A program made the translations under genes and the position numbers. Below the pieces are notes generated by a model. That model saw only the letters and a list, made by a program, of their open reading frames with translations, did no database searches and had not been told where the DNA came from. Shown here one piece after another: positions 12,539 through 45,500 of a DNA stretch of 46,739 bases (position 1 is its first letter; each line of letters begins with the position of its first letter). The stretch covers positions 1 through 46,739 of the forward strand of contig CBFFRP010000661.1 in NCBI GenBank assembly GCA_965644295.1. Reading direction: 5' to 3'. The DNA is from Paraphysomonas bandaiensis (Eukaryota > Protista > Chrysophyceae).

Positions 12539-12904
12539 AGGGTGACTGTCATGCCGTCGACGTTGAGAGGAGCAGGCAGAGGCCTGTTCGCAACAAAAGA
12601 AATAAGAGAAGATGGTATAATATGTGAATATGATGGCGAGCGGTGGTCTGCGGAAGAAGCAAAACAGAGGAGGGCCTCAGAGGATACGGATTATGTGTTC
12701 GCGGCTAAGAAGAGAGGGAGCGAGGTGGTATATGTGGATGCGAGGGAGGCAACATCCTGTTGGGGAAGGTTCGCGAACGATCCCCTGGACGACACACTAG
12801 TCAATGCCAAGATAGTGATGAGGGGAAAGCGACTGTTCGTGGTAGCAACTACAGAGATACTGCCAGGAGAAGAAGTGTTAGTTTCATATGGGAATGACTA
12901 TTGG
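12539..12904 (+). other. SET domain embedded in Gypsy Pol, between RNase H and integrase
   Basis: STLRGAGRGLFATKEI...IICEYDGE...DY...VDA...GRFANDPL...ATTEILPGEEVLVSYGNDYW contains the SET GxG, EYxG, RFxNH-equivalent and EELxxxY motifs. Confidence 0.9.
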
Positions 12905-14242
12905 ATGGGAAGGCTGGATAAGTTGGAACTAGAGCAAGCTGCACGAGTAAGGGGAGAATGGGAGAAGAAAGAGAAACGGAGGATGAGAGAAGGAGGAGAG
13001 GAGGATCACGCCAAGAAGTCCGTTGAGATGGCAAGGCCTGAGGAAGTGACGGAAGGAACGGGAAGGCGAAGGAGAAGCCAGAGAATGAAAAGGAAAGAGC
13101 GCAAGGAGAGAGAAGAGGCCGTTGAGATTTATGCATATGATAATGTACTACAGTGTGAGGAACTGGCGGAGGAATTACAGTTCCTGGTAGGCCGGAAATT
13201 TGTGGATGATGAAAATGGGCATTTGTATGAAGTGAGATCCATATTCTACTCCAAGGAAGCAAGAGCAGTGATGGGTTACCGGCGATCGCTAACGGGAAGG
13301 ACATACAGACATGATGATGAAGCATTTCCAGTATATGGACCGATGGGGTTGTATGCGCTGACGGACTTGTATCGAGTAGAAGGGAGTAGTGAGTCGGAGA
13401 GATGGCCAGTATGCGGGCGAGAGTGGAGGGATGCTCAGTATAAGGAGGAAGGGTTACGGTCATTAATGGAACAGATTCAGGAGGGCGAAGAGTTAGAGGT
13501 TAAGGATGAGGGAGTATACAGGATGATTAAGATTGAGGAGTCATTGGTATTACACCATCAGTTGAGGATGGGGGAACGCAAGATATGGAGGAGAGTGGTG
13601 CCTAGGGAGTTGACGGACACATGTATGAGGATTTTCCATGAGGGTATTGGACACGTAGGGGCCACGAGAGCAGTAGGGACGATGAAGTTGCATTACCACT
13701 GGGAGGGGCAACGAGCGGAGCATACTGATTATTGTCGTTCATGCATAGCATGCAAGCTGCGGAAAGCTTACAGGTGTAGACCAAAGGTGCCAGTGATGGA
13801 GTATCCAGAGGTTAAGCAACCCATGGGCAGGCTACATATTGATCTGACAGGGGAGCTGCCGGAGACGCCATGGGGAAATAAGTATATACTAGTGTGTAAG
13901 GATTTTAAGTCCAAATATGTGTGGATGTTTCCAATTGCGGATAAGAGAGCGGAGACAGTGGCTCACGTGTTAGTCACACAGATATACAACGCGTTTGGAG
14001 CACCACAGATGCTAATTAGCGACCGAGGACGGGAATTTGCGAATAAACTAGATAAACAGATCAGTAAGCTGTATCGGATCACAAGAGTATGTACAACTCC
14101 ACAGAATCCGAGGTCGAATGGTCTGGTGGAGAATATGAACGCCACATTGAAGGACCAACTGCATCACTATGTGAATGTACAGCATTCGGATTGGGATGTA
14201 TATCTGTCTACGATCCAATTATTGTATAACTCAACGGTGAAT

Positions 14243-15334
14243 AAGTCTGTGGCATGACCAAACCTGGTCAACTGGGGGCGACCTGGTCTAATGACAACTT
14301 TTTGCTAGAACCCTACTTTTAAGAGCGTAGAACTATAATAAAATGTTTTCTATGCGAATGGAAAAGTTTTAGAATAGTTTAGACTATTTTTCATCACATA
14401 ATACTAATTTAGAGTTGACATTATACACATCAAATACATACATATATATATTAAGTCGTAACTGATAACACACAATATATACAAAACAATCAGTTCGAAT
14501 AATTAACCGCGGCCCTCTTCCGCTTTCCTACAATCACATTTTTTACTTTTACATTTCCATCTTCCCATTCATCGTCTTCAGGAACAAGAACAAGCTCAAA
14601 TCTCCCCGCAGTCGACGGTCCTTTCTCTTTAGGTCTTCGTGTAGGTATGGTCCTCAAGAACTTTCCCCGTACCTTCTTGTCAAACCTGCCATCTTTGTAG
14701 AGTACATCGTACACGCGATGCGGCCCATCTTCGTAACAGGCTGTTATTTTACCATGCAAATTGTGAATATTCCGCACAACATCACCATCACTGTACACCG
14801 GATCCGGCAAAGACACTACACTTGTATCACTATCACTCTCAGCACCATCACTCTCAATACTATCGCTCTCAGCAACATCACTCTCACTTGCAGGCTCAAC
14901 TTCCTCAACACTATCTGCAAGCTCTACCGAACGAGGTGGGCGCACAACCAACGCAGATTCGGTCGTGGATGCTGTTTTCTTCTTTTTGGAAGAATTGTTC
15001 TTAGGAGCAGACCTTTCACTGGGAGCAGCCTTCTTGGGAACAGCTGCCCTACTTGCACGTGGTTTACGAGTTGTCACGACAATGTGGGCGGCAGCAGGAG
15101 GCTTTCCCTCCACCAAAACACCATACTTATCTTTAACAAGGACGCGAGGGGGAACCTCTTTGCTCTTTTGGCTTGGCTTTCGCTTTCCGGAATGAATAAT
15201 GCTATCGGTCGTTTCAACTTCTCTCATCGGAGGCAAATCATTTCCATCAATTTGTATACACGATGGTCGTACCTCATCACCTGGCATATAGTCCGGATTT
15301 ACATCAGTGTAGAAGAGCTCGTTCTGGAATGGTT
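14243..15334 (-). mobile_element. 1.1-kb unclassified insertion in element A integrase
   Basis: Removing 14243-15336 restores NSTVN-AATGYTPMYMMFGRE in frame. AT flanks both sides; there are no TIRs. Hairpin TGACCA-aacc-TGGTCA lies 12 nt from the left end. Confidence 0.85.
14490..15287 (-). CDS. Basic/acidic low-complexity protein (fragment) with a Tudor-like domain
   Basis: YSDGDVVRNIHNLHGKITACYEDGPHRVYDVLYKDGRFDKKVRGKFLR resembles a Tudor barrel; the C-terminus reads KRKRAAVNY. Confidence 0.55.
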   Translation of the reverse strand: MPGDEVRPSCIQIDGNDLPPMREVETTDSIIHSGKRKPSQKSKEVPPRVLVKDKYGVLVEGKPPAAAHIVVTTRKPRASRAAVPKKAAPSERSAPKNNSSKKKKTASTTESALVVRPPRSVELADSVEEVEPASESDVAESDSIESDGAESDSDTSVVSLPDPVYSDGDVVRNIHNLHGKITACYEDGPHRVYDVLYKDGRFDKKVRGKFLRTIPTRRPKEKGPSTAGRFELVLVPEDDEWEDGNVKVKNVIVGKRKRAAVNYSN

Positions 15335-15871
15335 ATGCAGCTACAGGTTATACACCCATGTATATGATGTTTGGACGGGAGGCATCAACGCCAGAGATGG
15401 TGGGCATTGATGAGAGGATGGTGGAGAGGCAGGCGGTGGTAGATGGGGATGAGGACTGGATTATAAATTTGGTGGAGGCATTGGAGACCGCCTGGACTGC
15501 AGTGACAGCTAGAACAAGGAAGAACTGGGCCCGAATGAATAGGGGGATTACCTCATATGCAGCTGAGCTGAGAGAGGCGACTGGTGACAAGACAGGCGGT
15601 GGCAAGGTGAGACAGCTACGCTATCGGGAGTATCAGGAGGGGGACCGATTCTATAGGAGACGGTATCCAGTCAGGACATTTGCCTCGGCCAAGGAGAAGG
15701 AGAAGTATAAAATTTCTATGAAGCTACAGCCACGGTTTGAGGGACCGTTTGTGGTTACGAAGAGGATTAATGCGGTGTTGTATGAGGCCGAGTTCTATGG
15801 TAAGAGGGGCCGGGTACATGCAGTGAATATGAAACCCGAGAGCGCTTAAGACCTGGTCAGGTCGTAGATTC

Positions 15872-15879
15872 GGGGGAAA
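15872..15879 (+). promoter_or_regulatory. Polypurine tract of element A
   Basis: GGGGGAAA immediately before the 3' LTR. Confidence 0.75.
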
Positions 15880-16404
15880 TGTGACAAATCCGCATGTAGT
15901 CCCATATATCGAGGGGTGAGTGTATCCTGACTACAGTGAGTATACGGTGGTAGGGTAGCTGTTGGGTGGAGGTATGTGTGTACGTATGTACTTGAGTACG
16001 TGAGTACGTATATAAGTGGGTATGAGGTACGATGAGTAGTAGATAGGTACGATAAGTAGTAGATGAGTACGACTACAGGGACAGTATTACGATAACTGTA
16101 GAGATACGATGGTGATAAGTATGATATGGGTGCTTAAGTGTAGAGCCAGCTTGTAAGTGCAAGATTGCTATGTGAGTCACTCTTTAAGGTTATGAGAGCA
16201 TAAGTAAGGAAGTTCTAATAATTGATAATTATACGATTATCAGAGCTTAAGGGTCTGTTTAATAGCATCTAACAGGCACCTAGTAAGATCAGACGTCACA
16301 GCACGTGTAAGAAGTTATCCGCGGGTATGAGCATAAGGTACCCAACTGATGCATCAACAAGGCAAAGCCCTCTGCCAAGGACCCCCACATCTCCGATCGT
16401 CTCA
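15880..16404 (+). repeat. Element A 3' LTR
   Basis: Copy of 4816-5340. Confidence 0.97.
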
Positions 16405-16985
16405 ATATGATATGGTATATATGATATGGTATATATGATATGCTATATATGATATGGTATATATGATATGTTATATATGATATGGTATATATATATGATA
16501 TGTTATATATGATATGTTATATATGATATGTTATATATGATATGCTATATATGATATGTTATATATGATATGGTTTATATGTTATATATGATATGTTATG
16601 TATGATATGTTATATATGATATGGTATATATGATATGTTATATATGATATGTTATATATGATATGTTATATATGATATGTTATATATGATATGTTATATA
16701 TGATATGTTATATATGATATGCTATATATGATATGGTATATATGATATGCTATATATGATATGATGGTATATATGATATGTTATATATGATATGGTATAT
16801 ATATATGATATGGTATATATGATATGGTATATATGATATGTTATATATGATATGTTATATATGATATGGTTTATATGATATGGTATGTATGATATGGTAT
16901 ATATGATATGTTATATATGATATGTTATATATGATATGGTTTATATGATATGGTATGTATGATATGGTATATATGATATGTTTTA
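16405..16985. repeat. 14-bp AT-rich satellite, right half
   Basis: Same unit as 4055-4815; split by element A. Confidence 0.97.
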
Positions 16986-19300
16986 TATCTTGGTGTCCGG
17001 CAGGTCCCCTTCACGGCCACTGACACTGTCTCGCACAAGTGGTGCCTCGACTACATCGCCGCCACCACCATCTGTCTCCGACACAAATGCGCCACACCCG
17101 ACTGCAAACTACTAGTCCTCAACATGCAAGTCCTACCTACCCTATATTACAAGGCCGCAAAGGCCTCTCCTGGACTTACAACAAATACCTCGAGATTCAC
17201 AGAGCGTACGCCCAAGCGGCCCGCGCAATACTTCGACTGCCCCCCGGATACCCCACAGCCCTCATTTACCTGCCCACCACGTACAAGGGCTTGGACTGCG
17301 CAAATTCTCGACTCATGCGCAACTCCAAAAATGGCACACCCTACAACGGGCAATTGCACTCGGCGGACAACCAAGGTCCGCGGCCCACACCCTCCTGCAA
17401 CGCGCACCGCACCTCCCCCAGATAATTGACACCTTCATACAAAGTCTTGTCACCTGGGGCTCCCAACTTGGTATTCGATTCACAAGCCTCCGACCAATAC
17501 AGAAACACAATAAATGATATCAGATCTCGACTCGCACTACACGACGACCCACCACATACCTAAGGCGCCTTTTTCACAGATGAATCGTACAAAAGTACAG
17601 ACCTCACCCCTGCACACTTGCTAGGTGACTCACACCCCAAACCCAATACACATTCGGGGGGTGCCGCAATAGTCTGGCTCCCGCCGAAACACCAATGGAC
17701 CAACAGAAAGGTCAAAATACTTAGACTCACCGCACCTCATACGGACACCCCGAGAATACACGCCTACTGCTATGAAACTCGTGCCACCACGGCAACCCTT
17801 ACGGTGACAGGTTCCTCCCACTACACAATCTCCCTCTGCACAGACTGTCAAGCCGTCCACACTAGAGCTGTAGAGGCCCTCTCTGGCTCACGGAGAGCAC
17901 TTGGTTCTAAATCCCAAGGTATATTCTACAAATGTTTAGCTGCCCTTACCCACACTAGACGCCCCATACACTGGGTACGCTCGCATCCAGAACGTCACAC
18001 CACAGACAAAACCAAATGGACCTTTCGAGAAATGGGTATCTTCATTGCTGATGCGGCAGCAAGTGGACATTGGAAACCTCTTGATGATCTCATTGGAACC
18101 CGTAACGTCACCACGGCCAACGTCACTCAGCTCATGGAAGACTTTCTCACTGCCGGACAGTGGACTGGCGTCGCTATGACATACATCTCCACTCCGACAT
18201 AGGACCACTTCTCGGGGACGCACTCGACCTTAGCTTCAAACACGACCTCCAGCAATACACCACCACCCGGGACGGTGTCTACGGCCCCCTTTCGAATTGT
18301 GATCCCCTTTACTGGACACAGAGCGGAGCAAGGCTACCATATAAACTCCACCCTCTCCGCACCCACAACACCCCCCACAGTGCCCGAGAAACTGACTATA
18401 CGTCTGGGACAAGATATACACAAACGGTCGGAACGTGCAAAAGGAAAACAAGAGAACGAAGCTACAGCTGTGCGAAATGTACCGACTGCAACCATGACCA
18501 CGACAGCATCGCACATATATATGGTCCTAGAGTGCTCTCACCATGAATGACGTCGCACAAGCTAGGGAAGAAATATACCACCAACACCGCCAGGCCATTG
18601 ACAAAGCCAAGAACATCACAGTCCTCCGACCACGGTTTTCCACTGTTCTCACCAAAATCTCCTCCGCAGCCTGGAATCCCAATACCCCCCAAGTTGAGAG
18701 ATACTGGACGGCCTCCCAACTAGCAAACGCATTCGGCCACCACATCTCCACTGCCATACAACCCCAGGAATTCCACCAGCTCGAAAAACTAATAATAAAA
18801 ATACTCAGATCACTTTACAATGGCTTCCGCATGCTTAAGGACAGAGGAAGGCGGCATATCCAAGCTCTCACTCCCAGCATACAGACGACAACGCACACTA
18901 CCGAACCAAGCCAATACGTTCACAGGCCCACCACGCCCAACCCGCCAATACTAAACCTCCTCCAGGTCTCATTCACCCCCAGAAATCCTTGAACCAAACC
19001 ACCACCCCCACGTACTCCCACCACGTACAAAAGACACGCTCATCACATTCCCCACGCGGCCTCAACCACCTACAGCGCGCTCTCTCCTCCTTACTACACA
19101 ATTCAGTCTCGCCTCAAGACTCCGAAGCGCATAGTCCCCACCTCTAGTACAACAGAGGTGTTACCTAAAGGTCGGCCCCCTGACTAAATTCATTAGCCGG
19201 AACAGTTGCACCATGGTGCTCGCAGCAATGCACAACTAGTTCCGGGACGCTAACAGATAGGTGATATTGCTTGTTACCTACAGTACCACTGACATAAAGA
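16986..19300 (+). pseudogene. 5'-truncated, degenerate LINE related to the 39537-46679 element (end of RT, RNase H, C-terminal Zn finger, 3' UTR)
   Basis: Fragments YLGV..., CKLLVLNMQVLPTL, LRLPPGYPTALIYLP, GGAAIVWLPPK, WVRSHPER, ADAAASG, CTDCNH and PKGRPP align with the intact LINE ORF; many frameshifts. The right boundary is approximate. Confidence 0.92.
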
Positions 19301-19345: not shown

Positions 19346-20692
19346 TGCAATGGAACTCAGGTTGGGACCTGAGAGCCAAACTCTAAATAAGCTAAAACTC
19401 GCTTTAAGAGAGAGAATGTTGCTTATTATTAACCTATACTACTTCTGCAGTACTAAATGCTTCTCGGCACCCCAAGAAACTAAAGCACAACTCACCAGCT
19501 ATGCAGTTCAGTACTAAACAGAAAAAGTGACGAGCTACAACAACCAACAAAGAGAGAACAAGCTTAACTAAAAAGAATGACGATGCGCTTGGGCGTTGAC
19601 AGCCACACAGTGACTAAATCCAAATTTTCTGCGAAGGAGTGACGATATTTATGAATATTCTTGGAGAATTCTTCTTCTTCATACTCTACACATTAATGTA
19701 TGGACTCTGCCGTATACACTCTCAACTGCTGCTCATCTAAACGATAATGGGCACTCGACCAATCAGCATTGAGAATAGGGAAAGCATTGGTTCAGTATTC
19801 GCTTCCTGTATTTATACAGTGTAGGGTACAGTATACTGGTACTGTATACCTACGAGTGATATAGACGCATACATACAATAGAGGAATACTGCAAATACAT
19901 CATATACAGTATATACGGTATACAGTGCGGTTGCTGAGAGGAGATGCAGCTCGCTCCTAACTGCCATCTTAATGTGATTGCAGCACACATACCGAACATA
20001 CTTGTAAGCGAGCAGATTATCGTGAAAATTGAACAATATGTCCAGAGATGCATTACCATTGTACTCGCTAACGACCACTGCTTCTTCAATTGCCGATATA
20101 GAGTACGAGGCGATATAGTATATTGACTGTGCAGCATCAGTACGAGGGTCCACACAGTGTGATGATCGAATGGAAGGTACCGTAAAATCATGTAATCAGT
20201 ACGTACAGTCATGACAGGTGATATACAGGTCCTTCTTCCAGACAGAGGCGGTCTATGGCAACCCTTAGCCACCAGTAATTGGAAATGGATATATGAACCA
20301 CACAGAGGCATATAATAACGGTAAAGAAGCCGCAGACACATCCACTGATTGCAGGAAAAGCACGTGTACACTGTTTACGTACTATAGGTGATTGTAGAAG
20401 CTACATATGTGCATTTACAGGCCACTGGTTGAATATAGAGCCATGTACACATATATACCATATATTAGGGTAAGGATACAACATATATATATATTCTGTA
20501 GAAGGGTCACAACCTATACATATATGTGTGGGTGAAAGAGAGAAACTAGGTTAGTATGTACGCATATATATGTATACATCCAAACTGTAATAATAATAAC
20601 TCTTCAAAAGAATTATATATCACAGCCCAGCATATAAAATAGAAGATAGTGCTGATGATTATAAACCTGCTTTAAACCTGCACAGGTTTACA
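19346..20692 (-). repeat. Element C 3' LTR
   Basis: TGTAAACCTG...CATTGCA on the minus strand, preceded by the purine tract GGGAAAGGAGGAGAAGGAGAGAGAGGGTAG. Confidence 0.95.
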
Positions 20693-20724
20693 CTACCCTC
20701 TCTCTCCTTCTCCTCCTTTCCCGT

Positions 20725-21285
20725 CTACTCCTGGGTTGGGCCATCCACAGCGAGGATTTCGGGGTGGTGCTTGGTGATCGTATCATCCACGAGAATCATG
20801 CTGGATTCATCGAATTCCCATTGACGACCCCACGCATAAACCATGTAATTATCAAAGCCATATAATTGCTTGTTGAGGTCAAATCGAACGGTAATTTTCT
20901 TGCGACTCCCGCCCTTGTGGTACCAACGGAGGTAGGTAAAAGGAACAACATAGCTGGAAGTTTCCCAGTCTGGAAGCTGTAGGGATTCATAGAAAAGGTC
21001 CCCAAAGAATCTCAAATCCACATATACTGTATCTCCCGGTGATACTGAGGTAATGTTTTCCTTGCGCTTGTCGCGTATGAATCTTGTGGCCATATCCGTG
21101 TCCAAGGATAGGTGAAAAAGGAAAGGCTTACTCTGGCAGAAGTCATAGTACGCCTCACATAGGATATCAGGGGTATACGGAATATCAAGAACTTCTCCAT
21201 CAGCATACTTAACCTTGAAAGTCATCGAAGTCCTCTTTCTGCAGTCTCCCTTGTAGCCAAGAATCTTATCGACCATGAACTGCAG
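20725..21285 (-). CDS. Element C integrase C-terminus: chromodomain plus an extra ~110-aa domain, frameshifted from pol
   Basis: QFMVDKILGYKG...FKVKYADGE. Alignment with the homolog at 35320-35960 shows a small deletion (about MRDHE) at ~21283 that causes the frameshift. Confidence 0.8.
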   Translation of the reverse strand: MQFMVDKILGYKGDCRKRTSMTFKVKYADGEVLDIPYTPDILCEAYYDFCQSKPFLFHLSLDTDMATRFIRDKRKENITSVSPGDTVYVDLRFFGDLFYESLQLPDWETSSYVVPFTYLRWYHKGGSRKKITVRFDLNKQLYGFDNYMVYAWGRQWEFDESSMILVDDTITKHHPEILAVDGPTQE

Positions 21286-24200
21286 CATTGAAAGCCTCCT
21301 CTGCCGAACCATAGAATAGCTCAAGATCCTCAACCGAAAACTTTTTTATTGCTCCACTTATCAGATTCCTACAATCCACATCGTTTTTGTATTGATGGAC
21401 AACTTGCATTGGACCCTTATGACGACACGCCAGTTTAGGATGTGGTTTTGGACCAGCATCAAACAAGACAAAATCTCCTGGCGCATACATATTTTGGGGC
21501 ATAAGTCTCGCTTGACTCGCTCTTTCTTCAACCAACTGATCTTGAAATTTCTTCGAAGCCTCTCGGAGCACTGTTAGATTCTCATTTAGCTGTTTTAGCA
21601 GCATGTGGGACGGTTCACCCTCACAATCTTTCAAAAGATCCTTATATACCGCGTCCACGGATCCAAATACAAGCTCAAACGGCGTAAATCCAGTCTCTGA
21701 GGACACATGATCATTGAGAATGTATTGTACGGAAGGAATCTTTGTAACATCATCGAAGATATCTTGGATCCTTGTGTCAAATACTAGTGCTCGCAAATGC
21801 CGCACCACTTCCTTTATTGGCCTCTCTGTACCGTTAGCATGTTTATCTGCAATGCTAAACACATGGCGCATTCCCATGAGCTGAACTAACTCTGCGAATA
21901 ACTTCGAGGTAAGGTCAGTACCCAAATCTGAGATAATCATGTCAGTATGTCCAAAATTGCTCCAATATATCCACACAGAAGCAGCTAAATTTTTCGCTGT
22001 AACGCCTATTATCGCTCTGAGAAATGCATGTTTGCTGAACAAATTAACAATGACCAGGATATGTGATTCACCGTTCTTCCCTGCTGGTGTTATCTTCACA
22101 GCATCTATTCCAATGACACTTCTCGCATGTGGGGGTTTCAGTGTTCTAGGGATCTTAATTAAACGGTTTTTACGCTCTCTCCGTGTTTTCTCACAGCACG
22201 CACACGAACTCACAAAGTCTGCTATTTCTTTATATGGAATCTGATGCCCAGGACACAGTTTATTCAGCCGATTCCACATCTCTTTAGCTCCCCAGTGGCC
22301 TGATTGGGCATTATGTACTTCCTCCATAAGTTCCTGGGCCCTTAATCTAGATACAGGCTCAGGGGCTGTCTCTGATATATCAGTTAGGTCGAATACGTTC
22401 ATGAGGGCGTGGAATGTCCAATCATCATCACTATCCTCTTCACCCATTGTTCTATCATGATCCGAATCATCCATGGAGATCATAAATAAACGCGATAGGG
22501 CGTCGGCCACAGTATTTTCTCTTCCACTGATATGTTGTACAACAAAATCAAACGATTGTAGATAAACTCTCCATCTGACTATTTTCGGCACTTCTGACGC
22601 CTCCATCCATCTTAGATTGTTATGGTCTGTCTGGACGATGAAGTGTTTCCCAATCAGGTAATACGCAAAATGTCTCACCGCATAAAAGATGGCATATCCT
22701 TCTTGCTCAATTGTTGACCATCTCATAGCTTCAGGTGAAAATTTCTTTGAACACATGGCTATAACTTGGTATAAAACTTCACCATTTTCGAGGCGTTTTA
22801 CTTGGAATAGGACTGCTCCAATACCGAACTCACTAGCATCCGTACGCAAGAACCACTCCAATTCGTAGTCTGGGTAAAAGACTGAACAAGCCTCTTGAAG
22901 TCCAGTTTTATAGTCCTCCCATTCCTGCCTATAATCTATTTTCCACGTGGTTTCGTCCCAATTAAAATCTTGCTTTGTAAGGTCCGTCAAATGCTTCACC
23001 TTGTCCTTGTAGTTCTCAACAAATGGCGCAAAGAACACACCCATACCCAGCATTGACCTCACCTTTTTCTGACGATTCCCACTCTCCGGAAAAGGAATTT
23101 TCAAAATAGCTTCCTTCCTATCATTGGTCAACTCATACGAATGATGTCTGCAATTGTAACCAAAAAAATGAACTTCTCTTTTCCCTAACCATGTCTTAGC
23201 AAATTTCAATACAACGCTGTGTTCAATGCAACGATCAAGGAACAAGTCGAGCTTCCTATACGCATCATCATAATCCTTTGCCAGTATTAAAACGTTGTCG
23301 AACAGACATATAGCCCAGTCAAAATCACCAAATAATTCCATAATAGTTTGTTGAAGCTTTCCACTGCCCGGTCCTATACCCTCAGGAACATATAACGGCT
23401 GGAATTGACCCCATGGGGTCTGAATCGATAGTTTGGCCGAGGTTTGCTCAGTCACGGGTATCTGGTGGAATGCGTTCGTTAGATCAATGTCTAGGAAGAT
23501 TTCATACTCAATAATACGATCCAGCTGATGACGCACATTCGGAATATAGTAATGTGGGATCTCCATATATTTATTGATGATTCGATAGTCACCACATAGT
23601 CTGATAAACGGCTTAGTCGCCTTAGGGGCCACTGTGAGACATGAAGCCCAGGGTGATGAACTTTTTACGTAAATATACCCTCTCAGACGCATAAACTCTT
23701 GTTCAGTAGCCTCATAGAGCCTAGGATTGATAGGTCGTGCCTTTGGTTTCAGTCGGTGGGGTAGATCCTCTCTAAATTTTATATCCAATGGCTCGATCCC
23801 CTTCATACCGGTCCACTTCTCCGGTACAAAAGCATTCACGCCTTTCCCACGTAGAAGTTCTTCAACTTTAGTGGATTTTCGAAATTCAGGGTCAATATGG
23901 TCCTCGAACATACTTATAAACTCACTGATTGCATCTTCTCGCGATTTACCCAGAAATAGTGACACATCCCCAAAACTCGTAGGCAGAGGGTTATCCTTTT
24001 CTTCAGAAGCTTCTTCTGCTGATGAAAAACTCCACGGCTGTAGGTATTGTTCGACGTCTGACACATGCAAAGTCTGCAACTCTGGTAAATGCATATTCTC
24101 GGTCCTAACTGCCTCAACTTCTGATTTAAAGAACTGCCATAGTTCTCCAAGAATCGCCGGCATACCTATGATGACTTCGTTTTGTAGCATCTCAAGGACA

Positions 24201-24622: not shown

Positions 24623-25050
24623 TCAGGCTCTGGTCTGGTCCCGCTTCAGGACCTTGGGGTATCCTTCTCTCTCAATCGTTGCCAACTTCTTCATTAACCA
24701 TTGCCTGGTCTCTTTAGCTGATGCCTCATTATGACCTTTCGCATTTCTGCATTCACTGCCCTTGAAGCAATTACCGTAGACTGCAAAATTGATACATCCC
24801 CTGGTGATCATCTTGTCTCCTGGTATAGCCAATAGACGCATCTCAGTCTCATCATGTGACGAACAAGGTTGCAAATCATCCATTTTCCTTTTAAGATCAC
24901 CTTTATCAAGAGTGCGCTCGCCCTCCAAAATATTGAGTCTAGATTCAAGTGCGGCAGATCTATCCGCTGGTAAGTCCATTTTCACAACCAAAGGCTGTAA
25001 AAGAGTCTTTATAGTGTCTTCTTCGTCAATTTCTATTGTTAACAATATTT
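24623..25050 (-). pseudogene. gag: Element C gag remnant (N-terminal coiled coil fused to C-terminal CCCH finger)
   Basis: Only ~140 codons versus ~600 in family B; retains GCINFAVYGNCFKGSECRNAKGH and PKVLKRD, which match the family B Gag end. Confidence 0.7.
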
Positions 25051-25077
25051 TCCGGCTTTTAACCCTAGTAAATTTAC

Positions 25078-28863: not shown

Positions 28864-29381
28864 CGAATCAGCAAATTTCAACAAGTCTTTGGTCGAAGGT
28901 ATCGCGGAACGATCGTTGAAGGAATTGAAGGAAGTATAGTTACACAAGTATAACCTGCCTTCATCATTGACACAATATATATTATCAAAGTACCACTTCG
29001 AGGTACAGTAGGCACTCAGAAAACGTTGTCCCAGTACCAGCAATAATTTAGCTTGTACTTCCCGCACACAGCTACACGACACTCAAACGATCGGCACTTA
29101 TCAAGAAAATACTGCTTCGGCTGCTATGCATTCTTCTTTTTATCACCTCTTTCATACAATCGATCATAGTGTCCTGCGCGTCGTCCAAGAATGTACCATT
29201 CAACGCATGGTAAATACAGTACACCCCTCACAAGCGCAACAACATATAATATATATGACACATACGACGCAACAGCATGCCTGGTAGGCTGTTTTCAGAA
29301 GACATTTCAGTTATTATTGTGATATAATATATATTTTAATCAATAAAATATATTATATATACACAATACACGAATAACAAT

Positions 29382-30478: not shown

Positions 30479-30945
30479 AATATCACGATAAGCAGAGAGT
30501 GGAGGGCACTGAAATTCTCTATACCTGTTGCGAACAACTCCACAGCTCACACAGCAAGCAGATTGAAATGATGAAGATAGCGCAACAAACTGAGAGATTA
30601 TGATGCACTGCAGAGAGTTTGATCTAAATGATGGCGATATTACTAGAGCCTCAGGCTATGTATGTATGTATGTATTATGGATGAGTGGAATATATATGTG
30701 TGTATGTATATACATGTATGCATGTGATGATGATGAATGAGGTCGAAGTGAAGTGAAGTCGAAGTGTTGAACTAAAAAAAGAGGATCGTATTCGGAATTC
30801 GGAATTTCTTCCATCATTTTTTTGAGTTGAGTTGCTGTTTTGTCATCAAATCCACTCCTCTCAGTGATATCACACACATACACATACAAACATATAAACA
30901 TATAGACATATATATACACATATATACAGCATACATGTTAAAGTA

Positions 30946-35960: not shown

Positions 35961-38900
35961 TGTGACCACGTGGCATTTCCCATGCCCTATCTACGTGGCT
36001 ATAGTATCACGCTATTGAGTCACATGCATGGTTACATTGACTTTTAGGACCCTATGTTGGTTTAAGACCCTATATCAGGACCCTATATATTGCTTTAGGA
36101 CCTTCATTGTGTTCAGGATACATATTATGCAACACCATTTGGACATTGCTAATGCACCACAGTGTACCTACATATTGAGCCAACGTTCGGGTATGATGTC
36201 CAATTTTTATCTGCTGCTGATGATGTACGACTATGATCTGCTGCTGGTGACTTCGGTCGATGTGAAACCTGCTGCAAATTTATATCAAAGTTATGTGGGC
36301 CCGTATTCCTGTGTAGCAGTGGCAGTATATACTTCCATATACATACATACATGTATTACCCGTACTACCCTATAGGGGGGCAAATACATGTGACCATCAC
36401 AGGAGAGAAGTCGCTATTATACACTTGAGGTGCACGAGTGTTCATGCAAGGCTTATTGGGGTTGGATTGCAATGTGGTATGCGTACTATACGTACTATAT
36501 GTACCGTATTTATGTATTTCCTGGATTATGGGGTTTTCAGTCTCTGGTAGGGTATAGATACGTAGTATACGGTGTACTCTCGGCATATGGTGGTGAGCCA
36601 TTCCCTATCAGGTTGCTGTGTATTTTTCAGTTTTGATTGAAGAGTTACACAACCTGTGGTGGTGTGATGACACCACGTGTGTTGCACCATGTTAGGAGTG
36701 TGTGTGTGTGCATATATGCTTCTATGGTGTTTATCACTTGTTTTAAGTTAGACCAAAGCTTGGTGCTAGTGATCTTGGGTGCCGGCGGTATACCATTGCG
36801 CGGTGGCTCTTTGCGGGAGTCACTAACTGAGTTTAGGTCTAAACTTGGAAAAAAGTGTTTTAATAATAATACCGTTATTACTGTGCTTGTTGGTTCAGTG
36901 TAGGTGTTGTTGTAGTTTTATTGTTTACGAGCCAACACCCTGGTTATCAAACCGGGTGTTGTTACAGTAAATATTTACTTTACTGCTCGTACAGAAATTT
37001 CTGTCTTTGCGCTGTTGTTTCACACTCTTATAAGAAACTAACTGCGACACGCTTCTTTGGGCTTGATTCTTTGGGCTTGTTGTCTGTTGCCTTCGGTTGC
37101 CTGTTGTTGTTGGTTGTCTGTTGTTCTCTGGGTGTGAGTTGTCAGTAGTTGTTCTCTAGGCTCTTTGTTCAGTGGTGATTGTTTGATTCACAGTGTGGTG
37201 ACTGAGGAAATTCGGTTCTTTTCGAAGTCAATCGACCGTGGATACCGCCTGTGTGTTAACTGTTGTCACTTGTACAAATCCGACGGGTTCAACGGGTTTG
37301 AGTGTTGAGTGTTGAGTTTTTGGATTCTTACGCAGGGTTGTCTTTGGGATTTGTCTTGTGGTGTCTTGGTGTGTTGTTGAGTTCTGGGTCAGTGGTTCTA
37401 GGAGTTGCCAGGGTTGCTTGTCTCAGTGTGTTAGGGAAAAGTTTGGTGGATATAGTCTTTGAGGCGGAAGTCCTTCTCATTAACCATGTCTACTCCGACT
37501 GGTAAAACGAGGAGAGGCGGCAAGAAAACTCCTGGGAAAGATCAGGAAGCCGCTGGTAGTGGTGAAACCAAACAAGATGCTGCTGGAGGTGTTCAGGATG
37601 TCGTTCAGGAGTCTTCTGCTCCAAACATCAATCCAAACCAGGAGATTTTGGACACAGTTCGTGCCATGTCTCAGTCTTTTACAGAGGTGGCTACTGCAGT
37701 ATCTAACCTCAGCAGCAGGATGCAAATATTGGAGGATAGAGTACAAAATGTTGAGGATGGTGAGAGCAGTCAGTCTCAGGCTTCTGTGGGCTCACATCAG
37801 CGGCAAAAGGTTACCAAGCGCACGTCGAAACACAAACGTCAGCCGAGGTATTCCACTCTGGAAAACATGGCTAAGTTTCGCATGATTCCTCAGGAAGATA
37901 ATAGCAACAAGGAGGACGATGGTTCGAATCCCGATGTTGATGGTGATGGTGCTAATGATGTGCCTACCCTCATGGATAACATCTTCAAGGGCAAGAAAGC
38001 GGGCAAGTTATTCAGGGATTTGAAGAAAAGTTCTGAGGTGGCTAGTGCCAAAACAGTTACCATAACTAGAGAGGAAAGGAGGTGTCATGTTCGCATCAAT
38101 GACTTTAAGTTGGGTAAAGTGGCGAAAGCGATCAAAGACATCTTAGAGTTTCAAGAGCAAGAAGAAACTGAGGTGCGAATTCAAAAGGTACTTTCAACCA
38201 GTTTGAAGGCACATCTGCGGAATGTGTACAGCATCACACATGCGCAGCTGGCACAAATGGATGTTTCGGATTTGCTTCTCATTGTGGCTCAGGAGACCAA
38301 GGTGTTCAATTGCGTGGCATTTTATAATGAACTCAGAGATTCCTTGAAACATATCCAGATTATGGACTGGAAGTATGTAAATGCTGTGACTTTTGAGGCA
38401 TTCTATCATCAGCAATTGAACTTGATGCAGTCGTTCCAAACAATGTTGTCTATCATGTTGGTCTCAAACAAAACATGGTGTCCTCGTATCGATGACAAAG
38501 AGTACGGATTGATAAGACTCTTTAAGACTTTGAATGACGGGACCTATGTTAAGTATGTGTTGGGGTGCATGTCGACTAATAAATTTGACTCTATGAGCGA
38601 ATTTTTCAAAGAGTATTCGGCTGTACTCTTGGATCATTATCAAGTAACCATCGCGTACCGACAGTTACCTATGGAGTCGACCACGATGTTTCAACAGAAG
38701 CACGAGGACTATCTTAAGAGGAGAAAGGAACTATTTTCTCAACAGTCCAACAAGCCTTCGTTGAACAGTCGTGTTGATTCTAAACTAAGGGTTTCCCAAG
38801 TGTCACATCTAGATACTTACGATGAGTCTGGAGGAAACTATGACGATGAATGGGTTGATAATGATGGGTATGTACCCAATGATGATGATTTGTGGGATGC

Positions 38901-39421
38901 TCCGAGTGAGACTTGGCGGTCCAGCAATCTGGAGGTACATGACGATAAACAAGTCGCTATAATGACAGATGTGAAACCAATGTCGGGTAACGGCGCAGCA
39001 GTTGATGAGGAGCGTCGTGTTAACTCTGATAGGTCTCTGTCAGCCATGCATAGTAGACCAACTGGTGCTCAGAATAGTAAGACCGATAAGTATGGGTGTC
39101 TTAGGAAAATCATGTATGGCAAGTGCGACAAAACAGACTGTCCATATAATCATAATGCGAAATGTCTGTTGGATTCTGCGTCCGAAATGCGGGACAAGAT
39201 CGATGCGTATCTTAAGTCTGCGGGAAGCTCGGAGCAGAGGGACAAACAACCGACCATCTTGAGGAGGGATCACTTCGGTGATTCCCGCCCTTGATGGTTC
39301 GGTGGATGTAACGATACAGACAAGGAGGATTCCAATTCTAAAACTCGTGATGAGAATGATGAATGTTCAGTGCATTCTAATATAAATAGATCTGATTATT
39401 ACATGAGAGAACTTGTTGCAT
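35961..39421 (+). mobile_element. 5' part of Gypsy family B element: LTR (35961-36966), leader, gag and start of pol; interrupted by the LINE
   Basis: TGTGACCACG...GTTGTTACA LTR, long gag ORF, and in-frame continuation after TGA until the LINE 3' end. Confidence 0.92.
37486..39294 (+). CDS. gag: Gag of family B with C-terminal CCCH finger
   Basis: ATG at 37486 downstream of the LTR; coiled-coil N-terminus; CLRKIMYGKCDKTDCPYNH; homologous to the Gag of C and E. Confidence 0.85.
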   Translation: MSTPTGKTRRGGKKTPGKDQEAAGSGETKQDAAGGVQDVVQESSAPNINPNQEILDTVRAMSQSFTEVATAVSNLSSRMQILEDRVQNVEDGESSQSQASVGSHQRQKVTKRTSKHKRQPRYSTLENMAKFRMIPQEDNSNKEDDGSNPDVDGDGANDVPTLMDNIFKGKKAGKLFRDLKKSSEVASAKTVTITREERRCHVRINDFKLGKVAKAIKDILEFQEQEETEVRIQKVLSTSLKAHLRNVYSITHAQLAQMDVSDLLLIVAQETKVFNCVAFYNELRDSLKHIQIMDWKYVNAVTFEAFYHQQLNLMQSFQTMLSIMLVSNKTWCPRIDDKEYGLIRLFKTLNDGTYVKYVLGCMSTNKFDSMSEFFKEYSAVLLDHYQVTIAYRQLPMESTTMFQQKHEDYLKRRKELFSQQSNKPSLNSRVDSKLRVSQVSHLDTYDESGGNYDDEWVDNDGYVPNDDDLWDAPSETWRSSNLEVHDDKQVAIMTDVKPMSGNGAAVDEERRVNSDRSLSAMHSRPTGAQNSKTDKYGCLRKIMYGKCDKTDCPYNHNAKCLLDSASEMRDKIDAYLKSAGSSEQRDKQPTILRRDHFGDSRP

Positions 39422-39536
39422 TTATCTAGCTATTACTTTAGACTAATTGTAACACAAAATATGAAATGCTCAGTTATCTCGGGACTGCTTGTGCATTGCT
39501 GCAAGCACCTTGGTGCAACCATCCCTTGTTTTAAGT

Positions 39537-42500
39537 TTAGTCTGGTGGTCGTCCTTTGGGTAGTGTATCTGGTGGTCCATATCCGCATGCGAGTCGGGGT
39601 GTGGGGGGTGACGTGCCATTCTGTGGATGTGTGTTAGCGGAGGGTTTGGGAGTACTAGTTGTGGTTGCGGTTCTGTCAGAGATGAGTGTTGTCTGCCTCC
39701 GGATCGGGTTGGCAGGCTTGCGTTGGGGGCGGGGTCTCGTGTGGGGCACGGCTCTGGGGGTGGATGTTGCTTTAAGTAGCTGGAGGATCGTCGGGTTGGT
39801 GGTAGGGTTTGTGTGACATTGTTGTGAGCTGGCATGAGTCGAGGTTGGTGTCATTGCTGTCGCATCGTTACTGTGAAATCGACATCCTCTGTTTTTGAGC
39901 ATGTTTATTCCTCCATTGTAGAGGGGGAGCAGGACTTTGGTGACGGATTTCTCGAGTTTATGGAACTGGTGGTCGTGTAACGTGGTGGAGATGTTGTGTC
40001 CGAAAGCATTTGCCAGTTGCGAGGCTGTTAGTTGTCCGGTCCAGTATCTCTCAACCTGGGGTGTGGTGGGATCCCAGGCAGCCCTCGCCAGTCTCTGTAG
40101 GGCGGTTTGGAACCAGGGGATGGGTTGTCGTTGCCCGTGGAGTTTTGTAAGCTGGGTTTGCTGTGTGTGGAAGGCATGTTCACGTAGTTGGGCGATCTCA
40201 GGGTGTGGACAGTGGAGGAGCATATGCGCCATGTTGTCCAGGTTGTGGTCACAGTCTGTGCATTTGGCTGCTGTTGTGAGTTCGTCTCCATGTTTGCCCT
40301 TGGCCCTATTTCTGCCCATCGCGTATGATTTGTCCCAGACATATGCAGTTTCGCGGATGCGGTCGTGGAATGGGACATAGCAGTTGGGCGAATTATTGGG
40401 CTTGAGGGGATGGAGTTTGTGTGGGAGCCTGGTGCCGCTGCGTGTCCAGTACTGCGAGTCTCGGCTTGCGCTTGCGGGGTACGTGCCGTCACGCGTGAGG
40501 ATGTATTGGTGGAGGTCCCATTGGTGTTGGAGTTCGGTGACATCCCCTAGCATGGGACCACAGTCGGTGTGGAGGAATTTGTCGTATCTTCTCCATTGCC
40601 ATTGGCCGGCAGTGAGGAATTCGTCGATGAGGTGTGTGATCTCAGTCGTGACCACGCTGTAGTTTGTGCCGCCTAATATTTTGTCAATCGCCGACCACTC
40701 TCCACTGGCGGCAGCGTCAGCTATGTAAATGCCATAGTCGTTGTAGGTCCAGTTGTTCCGATCTTGTGTTCGGCGTTCTGGATGGGAGCGGACCCATCGT
40801 ATTGGTCGCTGCCGGTGATTTCCTGTGGCGAGGCATTCGTAAAAGATGCCCTGGGGCTTTGTGCCGAGGGCCCGCCGCCGACGAGAGAGAGCTTCCGTGG
40901 TTCGTGTTTGGACTGCTTGGCAGTCGGTGCACATAGGTACGGTGGGGGATATGAGTTTCGAGAACGTGAGGGCTGCTGACATTGCCAGGGTCTCGTAGGT
41001 GTATGGGGTTATCCCGGGTAAGGTATGCTCGGGGGCTGTAAGTCGAAGGATTTTGGTTATTCCTGTGCTCCAGTTGGTTTTGGGTGGGAGCCAGACAATT
41101 GCTGCCCCCCCATAGTGTGTTGCGTGCTGTACGTGAGCGTCGCCGAGGAGATGAGCAGGAGAGAGGTTTGTGCGAGTGAAGGAACCATCAGTGAAGATGG
41201 CTTGAAAGTCGTGTGGATGATTGTTGTGTAGTTGGAGTTGGGTTTGGACCTTGTCGATGGTTTCTCGGAATTGGGGCGTGGCCGGGGATGGGGGCTGCAG
41301 TCGAATTCCGAGCTGGTGTCCCCATTGGACCAGGCTAGTGATGTACAGGTCGATGTCTGGGCGATTGTGATCGTGACGTTTTAAGATGGATATGGCGGCT
41401 CGCTTGGGTTCCCCCCCCAGGGTGATGGCCCTTTGGAGTGTGTGCCACTTTTGGGTCTGGGCCCATGTGGAGAACTTACGCAGGCCAAGTCCTTTGTATT
41501 TCGTGGGCAGATAGATGAGGGCTGTGGGGTATCCTGGGGGTAGTCGGAGGACCTTCCTGGCTGCTCGTGCAAGGAGTTTGTCTATGTCCAGGTATCTGTC
41601 GTACGTCCAGGAGGCTTTGGTGGCCTTGTAGAGTAGTGTCGGGAGTACTTGTGTGTTAAGCACTAACAGTTTACAGTCTGGGGATGCACATTTGTAGCGT
41701 AGGTGTGTTGCGGAGGTGGTGACGTAGTCGACACACCAGGCATGCGAGTCGGTGTCCTTCGAGGAGAACGGGAGTAGAACTCCGAGGTATTTGGTGGGGA
41801 CTGTGGTGGCTCTAATGGGGATGGTGTGCGGGTTCCAGTTCCAGTCTCTAATGGTTATGGTGGGCTCTGTGTCTAGCATGGCCTCAACTTCAAAGGGGGA
41901 GCCTATTGCAATGCATTCCGTTTTGGCTATGGCGAGCTGCATTCCCGTGAATGCACAGAAGGATGAGAGTCTGTCCGCCTTCATCTGCGCGGTGGCAATG
42001 GAGTTGGTTATTTGGGAGAGGTCGTCCGCGTACGCTTTGTCCTGACTGTCGTCCTTAAGGTCAGACCAGCAGAGAATCATGTCGAAGATGACGATCCATG
42101 CGACTGTGGACTCTGTTCCGCCTTGTGTAACGCCTCTGTTGGCGGAGAAGCCCATGTCGGGGTGTTGGAGGAAGGAACCGTCGGATTGACTTAATTCCTC
42201 TAGGGTTTTGGGATCGATGTGGTCAGCCATGTGCGGTGTCCAGATGTAGGTGCGCCCCTCGCTGTCGAGTTCGCTGAGCCATCTGATCGTGTCTTCTGGA
42301 ACCCCAAGTCTCGCCCACGCGAGTTTGAGGAGGTTAGGTGCAATGGAGTCGAAAGCTTTTTGAAAGTCCCAAAAGGTGCATAGTTTCGCGTTTCCTGTGA
42401 GCTTTGCCAGTTCGGTGGCCGCTAGTACACGAAGGATGGCAGTGTCTGTTCCATGTCTCCACCTGTAACCGTGTTGCGCCGGGTGTAGGACATCATCGTC

Positions 42501-45500
42501 TTCCCAGATTTGGAGGAGTCGGTGGGTAATAATGCGTGTCATCAGTTTACGGAGAACCTCGAGCAAACCGATCGGTCTTAAGTTTTTGAGGGAGGTGTTT
42601 CCCGGTTTCTTGAGTAAAGGGGTCATGACTCTGTCTTTCCACCAGTGTGGGATGTGGCGGTGAGTCCAGAGCGTTTGTAGGAGACCGAGTACTTCTATTT
42701 TGACTTGTGGGGTCCAACTTTTTATCATGTTTGTGGTGACCATGGACGGTCCGGGTGCTTTGTCCTTGGCCATATTATCAAGTGTGGAGTGGAACTCATG
42801 GATCGAAATTTGTTGCCGGAGGGCTTCCTGTATCTTTGCTGAGGTGGATGAGCCGACCTTTGTTTTGCATAGTTTGCGTAGTCCGGAATGATGTTGTATC
42901 GGGATAGCGGAGTTTGGGTGGAGCGGATTGTGTAGGTTCTCACCGGCGGTTAGTTCGCGCCACCAGTTGTCGTCGTAGTGTAGTCTGTGGGCGGTGGGGT
43001 CCATGCCTTTGGGGAATGCGTGGTGTGCCGTGAAGTGCTTGTTCAGGGCTTCCTGTATCTCCGATGGAATGGTGATCGTGGCCCCGTCCTCCAGGGTGAG
43101 GCGGGTGAGCGCTGGTGTCTGCTTCCGCTTTAGTCCGATGGATTGGAGGATCTTGCGTATCTGTTGTGTTTCGAGTTGGGCTTGGAGGGCGTGTGTTCTG
43201 GTGGTCATCCTTTTCCTCATTTCAGCTCGGGCTCTCCCGTGGAGCATTCGCATGAGACTGTCACGGAGGTTGTCGAAGGCTTTGCCCGTGACGTTAGTTG
43301 TGGTCCATGTTAGCATTTGCCTTGGGTCTATCGCGGCCCGGATGATGGCTGTGGGCGGTCGATCGTGGTCCTCTGATGAGCGGTCAAGTGCAGCAGTGGT
43401 GCGCTCCCATCTGCAGATTCCTCTCCGGACGATGCTGTATAAGTATGCGTCGGTGACACGGGGGTGTAGGTGGCCGGATCTGGTGAAGAGCTTGCGTTTG
43501 AGATATACAATCAGGTGGAGTGCCATTTGCAGGACTCTCATTTCGGCGGAGAAGCCATCCTTGAACCGGGATCGTTTTCGCTGGCATTTTGCGTGGATGC
43601 CGTTTTTCTTGGTTCTGTCCGCGTGGCGGGTGTCGTGGGCCGCTTCTAAGGTGATACGATGGAGGAGCGCCAGTTTTATGGCTGCGTTTTCAGCGGGGTG
43701 GGGGTGCGTGGGGAGCGTGGACAATTTGTGGTGATGTTTGTGTAGGTGGGTCTGGAATTCTTCTACCATGTCGTGGTCGGCAGGGTTGATGTTGAGCCGT
43801 GGAGGAATCTGACGGTGCCGTTCCTTGGGAAGGGTTGGTCCTGTACCGCTAATGTCAACCTGGATCCAGACCGGTCTGTGATCAAATGGTGCAGCAGCGA
43901 TGGCATCAGATGTGTGGCATCCATTGCGAGTGTTATGAAAGTGTGTAGGAAGGGGAGAATGTAGTATATGGTCTATTCTGGAGATGCCGCGGTCTTTCCA
44001 GTAAAAGGTGTGGTATGGTGCCTCCTGGTCAAGGGTTTGTATGAGAGGGGCTGTTAGCTGCAGGGATCTTGCTAAACCTCTGAGGTCCCTCTTACCCGTT
44101 TGTCCCTCTAGGGTGGCGTTGAAATCTCCGCCAACTAGTACTGTGTGGTTGTTTGCCCTGGCTTTGGTGATCCATTTGGACAGGATGTTCGTGAGGATGT
44201 CATAGGGTCCCGTGGCGCCGTTCCTGTGAGCATTCTTGCCGAAGGCTTTTAGTGATGCCCATAGTGTGCAGGGTCCATCGGTCGCAGGCTTGGGGGGGAG
44301 GTACACTCCTATGGTAGTGAATCTTTCTTCTCTGTTAGGTCTGCCGGTGTGAAATTCGATTCGGGAGATGAGCCCTAATCCAGTGCAGTCGGAGCCTGTG
44401 TGGCGGACTCTTCCTTTCCACGCTTCGCTGATCACTGCAATAGTTCCTCCCATGTGCGGATCGTTGGGGCCCTGTTTCCGCGTTGAGTTGAGAAAGTTGC
44501 AGACAAGAGCCCCTGGAATCTGGTCCTGGATGTAGTCAGCAAGGTATAGTGCCTGGTTTTGTGACAGGCGGACGTCGAGCAGGTAAAGACAGTCTATTTG
44601 GTGTGTGCGTATGTAGTGTAGGATAGCTTCGATTTTTCCAGGGTTGTTGGAGGGGTTACCGTTTACGTTCCATGTGGAGAATATGAAGGTCGTAGTACAT
44701 GACACCAGGCTGTGGTTCGGCTCTGGGGGTTTGGGTGTCGCCTGTGCATGTGATTGCTTACTGGCGATGAGGTCTTGCCACTCCTGCGTGCAGAATTCAA
44801 CGTCGTCAGCGTATGCCTCTCTCGCTTGTAGTAGGATCTCAAGCGGCCACTTGGGGTGTTGCCAGTATCTGTACCCGTAGTGTACAAGTAGTTCCTCGTG
44901 AGTCGCAATGTTCCGTGTGGTTCTGATGTAGATTTTGTCTTTTTTCGTGTGGAATTCTACATTAGCAGCCCTGGCCTGTAACGGATCATTGATGTACCCC
45001 GCTGCGCATAGTATACTTTTGCTTCGTTTGTCCCTTGCGTCTATCGCAAATGTACCTTTCGCGTCTTGCACGAGGTAGTCGGAAGTGTAACCGGTGGACC
45101 TGGCTTCTGTTATGGGTAGGCGGTGTCCAGTGTACTCAGAAATAATGGTATGGGCAGGGATTGGTTCCCCCGCATATAGGGCGTTCCCCTTGGTAACTGT
45201 GTCTGCCGTGCCCACTAGTACCTTGTATCGTAACGTTGTGTCCCAGGTGAGCGGGAGGGGTGGGTGGGCCGTTTGGAGTAGTGTGTTGAAAGTAGCCCGT
45301 GGGCGGTATATGGCGTGTGTTTGGACTTCGTCGGGGTCTTCTGCGTAGGAGCTTGTGGTGCGGGCTGTACGGGCAGGCTGTTTTCGCGTGGGGACGGGCG
45401 TTGGGTTCCGTGCTTTCTTTCCTTTGGCTCTCCTTGCTCCGGGGACATCTCGGAGGTGAGGAATGCGTGGCGGCGCGTCAGGTGGGGAACTGCCCGCTGT

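Follow-up and report, generated by a model that had tools for sequence, protein, structure and literature searches.

Compact SET domains within the polyproteins of Gypsy and LINE retrotransposons of Paraphysomonas bandaiensis, candidate lysine methyltransferases under purifying selection

Transposable elements (TEs) have captured chromatin readers, including the chromodomain, PHD and methyl-CpG-binding domains (MBDs), as well as DNA methyltransferases (DNMTs), and these captures have reshaped the view of the arms race between elements and silencing. Among Gypsy elements, chromoviruses possess such a chromatin-related accessory domain at the integration end of Pol, in the form of a chromodomain reader that follows the integrase (IN). 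Retrotransposons that captured DNMT and methyl-CpG-binding domains have been described as well (de Mendoza et al., 2018, PMC5890265; de Mendoza et al., 2019, PMC6673714). Here we analyse a contig of Paraphysomonas bandaiensis (CBFFRP010000661.1, C661 below), the whole of which, 46,739 nucleotides, is called the window; it belongs to a 62.5-Mb eukaryotic assembly and consists of a pile of TEs. Pfam searches of its long open reading frames (ORFs) showed that two of these elements, a Ty3/Gypsy long terminal repeat (LTR) retrotransposon and a long interspersed nuclear element (LINE), bear a SET domain. Like a chromovirus, the Gypsy element has its accessory domain towards the integration end of Pol, but the domain is a writer-type SET fold and lies between RNase H and IN.

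The DNMT and MBD retrotransposons resemble the present elements in placing an epigenetic writer or reader in the polyprotein, in being multi-copy and in their recurrent acquisition in protist lineages; they hold a C5-DNMT or an MBD, whereas a SET is found here, and in two element classes of one genome. Thomas et al. (2014, PMC4067079) described OTU proteases in Helentrons and, in a proto-Helentron of Phytophthora, a SET ORF of about 153 amino acids (aa). The proto-Helentron is likewise a stramenopile mobile element with a SET gene, although it is a DNA transposon of the rolling-circle type whose SET forms an ORF of its own, not a retrotransposon with an in-frame domain of its polyprotein. According to the available parts of a preprint by Grau-Bove et al. 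(2022, bioRxiv 10.1101/2021.11.30.470311), 823 gene models in 172 genomes fuse chromatin and TE domains, SET ranking behind PHD, Chromo and SNF2 among the fused chromatin domains. Its Supplementary Table 6 includes the Symbiodinium model Smic2990 ('SET RVT_1 DnaJ'), which resembles LINEs and whose SET falls in a PRDM-like orthogroup; neither RNaseH-SET-IN nor SET-Exo_endo_phos is found among the entries listed from that table. In those parts the fusions, which likewise join SET to TE domains, are a generic listing of gene models without family analysis, selection test or phylogeny of the TE-borne SETs. The GyDB 2.0 paper does not mention 'SET domain', and full-text literature searches, which did not cover Repbase, found no paper that describes a selected family with SET inside a LINE ORF or a Gypsy pol. 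An earlier note on this DNA had held, correctly, that Gypsy and LINE proteins do not normally include SET, and had supposed that the architecture might be new, a claim to be tempered in view of the SET-TE fusions already on record. The case extends a known theme, the capture of chromatin machinery by retrotransposons.

The SET-bearing Gypsy is a real, young Ty3/Gypsy LTR retrotransposon (Table 1). Its termini are TG...CA, and a 14-nt AT-rich satellite array (window 3982-4815 and 16405-16988), split by the insertion, continues on either side of it; ATAT stands on both flanks, which in so AT-rich a satellite is weak evidence of a target duplication. The domain order by Pfam is reverse transcriptase (RT)-RNaseH-[SET]-IN zinc finger-IN core, with SET about 230 aa N-terminal to the zinc finger, and two further copies, on contigs C476 and C463, are 94-97% identical to the window element. 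The earlier note had placed SET in frame within both replication polyproteins, as is indeed so in the LINE ORF and in the C476 Gypsy copy, where RT, RNase H, SET, IN and an SH3-like part lie within a single open frame of 1947 aa. In the window Gypsy, SET and RT-RNaseH share a frame, but an in-frame stop at 11903-11905 intervenes between RNase H and SET; this position is a sense codon in the C476 and C463 copies. Compared with the C463 copy, the reading frame of the window copy is also shifted near 9525, and the 1092-bp insertion in the integrase of the window copy contains ORFs on both strands without Pfam match, the SH3-like C-terminal part of integrase picking up again in ORF 15358-15849. 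No Chromo domain was matched by Pfam in the C476 polyprotein or the window ORFs, and no reader domain at E<=5 in the linkers flanking the Gypsy SET.

The SET-bearing LINE is also a real, young TE. It is of the apurinic/apyrimidinic endonuclease (APE) type, with Exo_endo_phos N-terminal to RT in one ORF and with copies that have a common 3' end; the best PDB sequence matches of its RT are R2 and the LINE-1 ORF2p RT, and APE begins about 65 aa C-terminal to SET. A copy on C644, 99.6% identical, has a frame of 3731 aa, and another on C566 is 97% identical. Homology between copies ends at 39380 with the common 3' end (...TCTATTTATAT, no poly(A)), after which the flanks differ. An OTU-like protease, looked for in the N-terminus of the window LINE because of a by-eye 'NGYC ... 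HY' motif, had no Pfam match at E<=5. It could be argued that these ORFs are host genes with a domesticated RT, IN or APE, or mis-assembled chimeras, and a host gene that joins SET to a transposase is known in SETMAR, where SET and a transposon-derived enzyme share one protein. SETMAR, however, is a primate gene, domesticated and single-copy, and its transposase is that of a DNA transposon, whereas the elements here are mobile, multi-copy retrotransposons. A satellite surrounds the identical LTRs, which have TG..CA ends, near-identical copies are dispersed by the dozen, LINE copies have one 3' end and different flanks, and the same architectures stand on independent metagenome contigs; all this makes host genes or chimeras an extremely improbable explanation.

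Both SET domains exceed the Pfam cut-off of 22.4 bits for PF00856 (Gypsy, 51.5 bits, E 1.5e-13; LINE, 35.3 bits, E 1.7e-8), and both pass the 27-bit cut-off of PRDM2_PR (30.4 and 29.5 bits, respectively), with no zinc fingers. An alignment of the two covers 128 aa at 31% identity (E 4e-14), with NDPL and EE.LV.YG..YW in common, and the Cys-rich pre-SET and post-SET are absent from both translations; pairwise alignment found no common flanking sequence outside the SET fold. AlphaFold2 models built with a 53-54-sequence alignment reached a predicted local distance difference test score (pLDDT) of 91.4 for the Gypsy SET and 91.3 for the LINE SET, and a predicted template modelling score of 0.83-0.84. 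In Foldseek the best matches were SETD8, PRDM9 and G9a (E 1e-9) for the Gypsy SET and SETD8, G9a/GLP and SET7/9 for the LINE SET, MLL1 being also among the matches; over both domains E ranged from 1e-9 to 1e-8 and the template modelling score from 0.6 to 0.74, and giant-virus SET proteins matched at about an equal level. Both domains are thus confidently predicted to adopt a SET fold, nearest to those of active histone lysine methyltransferases, and the earlier note had correctly read a SET in each element, as well as the alignment pattern with NDPL and the loss of the post-SET. Known compact SETs (SETD8/KMT5A, PRDM9, PRDM12, and giant-virus and bacterial proteins) share with the TE SETs the minimal fold without Cys-rich pre- or post-SET, YG..Y(W) and the matches to PRDM2_PR, and are also their best structural matches; those proteins are stand-alone or zinc-finger-linked, cellular or viral, and have NH or NC, whereas the TE subfamily has ND.

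A family profile and the G9a SET can be aligned over their full length (E 5e-15), and equivalents of GxG, the '(D/S)Y'-strand Tyr, the NH-motif Asn and the Tyr in 'ELxFDYG' are all present; from the literature, we take the aligned G9a and SETD8 residues to be catalytic. Within the Gypsy and LINE clades described below, the Tyr of E-E-x-x-x-Y-G is kept in 24/24 and 31/31 rows, respectively, and N97 is invariant in both. The Tyr aligned with the D-Y-G Tyr of G9a is invariant in 53/53 rows and in both clades, and there is almost no variation in the glycines of GxG or in the D-Y strand Tyr. In the ND motif, 24/24 Gypsy-clade and 28/31 LINE-clade rows have the Asp, and 17/24 and 31/31 the Asn. This residue pattern favours a working pocket for S-adenosylmethionine (SAM), short of proof of activity. 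The main functional rival is a tether, a SET fold that binds histone tails or nucleosomes and steers integration with no methyl transfer, much as the chromodomain would in chromoviruses. In its favour are the position next to IN or APE and the presence of Asp for the canonical His and, in part of the Gypsy clade, of Gln for Asn; many animal PR/SET domains, moreover, are weak or inactive enzymes. Pure binding, however, would have no need of SAM-pocket residues and a catalytic Tyr that are almost invariant in both clades and in the wider subfamily, and we consider such a tether unlikely.

Six-frame searches of the genome with each SET domain gave about 80 matches per query, most of them in TE open frames of 1000-3700 aa and spread over several Gypsy and LINE families. 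Gypsy family A comprises copies on C661, C476, C339 and C463, with relatives of 51-66% SET identity (C654, a C463 variant and C656); Gypsy family B comprises nine near-identical copies with 1526-aa RT-RNaseH-SET-IN frames, whose SET shares 34-37% identity with the family A domain and has NDGI for NDPL. On the LINE side, family A is found on C661, C644, C566, C409 and C505, and is accompanied by family A2 (81% SET identity), family B (73%) and a large family of about 35 copies (about 50%) with frames of up to 3021 aa. When the genome was searched with the RT-RNase H of family A, each Gypsy RT with 46% identity or more proved to sit on a SET-bearing element, while none of the remaining Gypsy RTs exceeded 32%; SET is therefore carried by one Gypsy lineage as judged by RT-RNase H identity, which fits a single capture in that lineage. 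The distance from the RNase H end to the integrase zinc finger is about 70 aa in the SET-less Gypsy of the window and about 520 aa in the SET-bearing family.

Ratios of nonsynonymous to synonymous substitution (dN/dS), calculated on the SET codons by the Nei-Gojobori method, were 0.04-0.06 for Gypsy A (window versus C476), 0.17 within Gypsy B, 0.05-0.16 among LINE A copies and 0.09 for LINE A versus A2 (dS about 1.4). By domain, Gypsy A gave 0.04 for SET, 0.00 for RT, 0.01 for both RNase H and IN, and 0.13 for the SET-IN linker, and LINE A gave 0.05 for SET versus 0.21 for APE. Between LINE A and B, amino-acid identity was 75% in SET, 77% in APE and 84% in RT, with 49-51% in the N- and C-terminal parts. 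SET is under purifying selection as strong as that on RT, IN or APE, and acts as a core domain of both elements. This bears on the view that SET is a neutral passenger, a host exon or viral gene fragment carried by chance and without function for the element, for which one may cite the host sequence transduction that occurs in retroelements and the defective state of the window Gypsy. Constraint like that on the core enzymes removes this reading, and SET also keeps the same position in Gypsy families that are 46% identical in RT-RNase H and 34-37% in SET, and in distant metagenomic relatives. Genome SET searches found no selected host gene that could have lent its low dN/dS to the elements by gene conversion. 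The passenger reading, which we deem very improbable, was rejected together with that of a domesticated host gene on the evidence of selection, copy number and LTRs. The multi-copy, selected SET that the earlier note's proposal depends on is accordingly present, with neither single copies nor neutral drift seen.

When 1.84 billion representative proteins were searched exhaustively by HMMER with a profile built from eight TE SETs, 13,148 of them matched at E<=1e-3, and 1,943 reached E<=1e-10. The nearest ESM Atlas clusters consist of SET proteins of about 150 aa, with few taxonomically labelled members, mostly Bacteroidota and Nucleocytoviricota. In an alignment of 172 rows, made up of 143 of the top 150 library matches and 29 SETs of the host genome, ND[PAGSH][LIR] takes the place of NHSC in most rows, and YG..YW is found in 122. 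The subfamily is characterised by ND.. for NHSC, YG..YW and the lack of pre- and post-SET, and many of its members are stand-alone proteins of about 150 aa. NDPL, which the earlier note had taken as a peculiarity of the Gypsy and LINE pair, thus marks a very large compact SET subfamily; being subfamily-wide, the shared motif is no evidence of exchange between elements.

Members of the subfamily occur in several contexts outside the host genome. Gypsy polyproteins with SET are P0013, P0015, P0028, P0037, P0048 and P0057; among metagenomic relatives, the host's Gypsy architecture is found in P0013, P0037, P0057, P0154 and P0156, and the SET-APE LINE architecture in P0021, P0029, P0077 and P0157, the first three of which are LINE fragments. 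A third RT-linked clade is represented by P0051, where a SET ORF of 1326 aa stands directly ahead of an RVT_1 ORF of 2132 aa (L063:5684-16127, in a metagenome contig of 27 kb). Other HMMER contexts are PRMT5-SET(-DOT1) fusions (P0027 and P0033, DOT1 in one only; PRMT5 is an arginine methyltransferase), a PRDM zinc-finger protein (P0071), a kinase fusion, multi-SET proteins, many proteins of 130-300 aa, and a metagenomic relative (P0016) in which a RickCE-like protease domain adjoins SET. No genomic context could be recovered for clade members on the short metagenome contigs L060-L062. A shared-5-mer search for full-length or short relatives returned 5, 4 and 1 matches, numbers with little bearing on rarity. 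It was also observed that P0013, P0057 and P0156 (about 2500 aa) have Exo_endo_phos (aa ~470-800) N-terminal to RT, besides RT-RNaseH-SET-IN; a nuclease of the endonuclease/exonuclease/phosphatase type is unusual in an LTR-type polyprotein.

Trees made with FastTree (172 rows) and IQ-TREE (LG+C20 PMSF, 78 rows) agree with each other. All SETs of known Gypsy context form one clade (support 100/99) and all those of known LINE context a separate one (98/96). Both clades are nested in a group of 51 rows (93/91) that also takes in small SETs and the third RT-linked clade, and the order within this group is poorly supported; the PRDM protein P0071 and the canonical NHSC host SETs fall outside this group. 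Forcing Gypsy and LINE together costs 4.4 units of log-likelihood and is not rejected by the approximately unbiased (AU) test (p=0.39).

The host genome holds further associations of SET with TEs. A third SET type (GLFA...GRFVNT...GEELLADYG) lies antisense near SET-less Gypsy RTs at C564:5678-6043(-) and C599:3685-4050(-) and 11582-11947(-). The full LINE of C644, outside the window, has a second weak SET-like domain (L029:3665-4036) about 1330 aa upstream of the main SET, at 20.9 bits just below the Pfam cut-off; in the FastTree tree it falls with the antisense type of C564, within a distinct SET type that also includes C338, C51 and C505b. These associations suggest that SET pickup is apparently easy for elements of this host.

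The phylogeny points to one old capture per element class, followed by retention under purifying selection. The alternative, put forward in the earlier note, is direct exchange, in which SET was captured once by one class and moved later by recombination between co-packaged or co-resident elements, so that sister SETs are expected. Membership of both SETs in the 51-row group, the AU result, the position of SET just upstream of the integration enzyme in both classes and the Exo_endo_phos of some metagenomic Gypsy-SET polyproteins, which tells us that foreign modules do get picked up, are all compatible with it. Sister grouping, however, is seen in none of the trees; the window Gypsy SET is 28-35% identical to the LINE clade and 29-38% to other subfamily members; the motifs in common are subfamily-wide, and no flanks are shared past the fold. 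The third RT-linked clade (P0051, L063), and the other SET type in the same LINE and near Gypsy elements, further argue that repeated capture is easy. Nothing positive in these sequence comparisons favours transfer between Gypsy and LINE, although the AU test leaves room for it, and we find it rather doubtful.

Taken together with one capture per class, the picture that we favour is that of a compact PR/SET-like lysine methyltransferase domain residing inside the replication polyprotein of two unrelated, recently active retrotransposon lineages. In both classes SET lies just N-terminal to the enzyme that acts on target DNA, IN or APE, and a SAM-dependent lysine methyltransferase would thereby be delivered along with the integration machinery. 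It may methylate nucleosomal histone tails at or near the insertion site, or element or host proteins bound there, and could in this way determine the chromatin state of newly inserted copies or help in selecting targets. This reading of an active enzyme is the most economical because SET adjoins IN or APE, is conserved as they are, and keeps most SAM-pocket and catalytic residues. On balance, we think it probable that SET is catalytically active as a lysine methyltransferase and reaches the insertion site with the integration machinery. The data establish the identity, fold, position, copy number, selection and clade structure of the domain, and from these features we infer catalysis, substrate and biological effect; our confidence in any specific substrate is considerably lower than that in activity. 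We would not expect the fullest version to hold, namely that active histone-lysine methyltransferases of marine-protist retrotransposons mark nucleosomes at their own new insertions, so that a new copy would owe its first chromatin state to the element and not to the host, with the module possibly exchanged between LTR and non-LTR elements.

Several observations weigh against an active enzyme of mobile elements. The canonical His of NH(S/x)C is replaced by Asp, so that the (R/H)xxNHxC SAM-binding motif is absent, and Gln replaces the Asn of ND in 7/24 Gypsy-clade rows; loss of the NH motif is subfamily-wide, and there are likewise PR/SET domains without NH. We know of no characterised enzyme with exactly this ND motif. 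The window Gypsy copy is broken, and many members of both clades are fragments from short contigs, so that TE-borne status is claimed here for those of known context. Of the 20 public sequencing runs that contain the LINE, none is recorded as RNA, and the four examined resemble DNA assemblies (records of 30-50 kb). If the proposal of an active enzyme is true, a histone-type lysine methyltransferase under selection in two retroelement classes would extend TE capture to histone writers. The SET-bearing Gypsy and LINE classes are abundant in the host genome and present in marine metagenomes, and they offer a tractable test system, with confidently folding domains of about 150 aa and young insertions that allow chromatin profiling.

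Table 1. Positions of the SET-bearing elements, their domains and a third element in the window.
Feature	Position	Strand	Evidence and remarks
Ty3/Gypsy LTR retrotransposon with SET, damaged copy	4816..16404	+	525-bp direct repeats, 100% identical
5' LTR	4816..5340	+	100% identical to 15880-16404; begins TGTGAC, ends TCTCA
995-bp solo-LTR-like insertion, in 5' part of Gypsy	6182..7176	+	absent from C463 copy; GGAG on both sides
Gypsy pol part 1: RT 10973-11434, RNase H 11633-11896	9527..11905	+	RVT_1 4e-16, RT_RNaseH_2 8e-26 (Pfam)
Gypsy SET domain	12575..12892 (full fold ~12515-12958)	+	aa 221-326 of ORF 11915-14257
Integrase zinc finger 13598-13768, catalytic core 13817-14110	13598..14110	+	Integrase_H2C2 5.5e-10, rve 9.4e-13
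1092-bp insertion interrupting integrase	14243..15334	unassigned	absent from C476 copy, flanks contiguous there
3' LTR	15880..16404	+	purine-rich tract immediately upstream
Third element, SET-less Gypsy	~19346-26101 (pol ORF 21266-24553)	- (pol ORF)	Pfam
LINE (non-LTR), 5' part lost at contig end 46739	39380..46739	-	99.6% identical to C644:6107-13465
LINE ORF, 2380 aa: SET, APE, RT, long C-terminal part	39537..46679	-	Pfam
LINE RT	41778..42611	-	aa 1357-1634; RVT_1 3.4e-18 (Pfam)
APE-type endonuclease	43947..44675	-	aa 669-911; Exo_endo_phos 5e-12 (Pfam)
LINE SET domain	44874..45188 (full fold ~44814-45248)	-	aa 498-602 of LINE ORF

Other repeats were noted in the window. A tandem array of a 50-nt repeat, with about 27 units that are 98-99% identical, occupies 29233-30582. 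A repeat of about 1 kb that resembles an LTR is present at 6182-7176 and 35961-36964, and inverted at 3049-4054; the copy at 35961 heads an element that has a 611-aa ORF (37459-39294) without Pfam match and abuts the 3' end of the LINE. Elsewhere in the assembly, three LINE-type SET matches in C505:57985-62775 stand exactly 2178 nt apart and resemble a tandem array of a LINE fragment, and silicon-transporter Pfam matches above the cut-off were found at seven loci. With respect to distribution, 73-89% of the words sampled from window 42000-46700, within the LINE, are present in the 20 public runs mentioned above, which come from 14 studies, with seawater and marine metagenomes among them as well as four coded organisms; the host or its close kin is therefore widespread.

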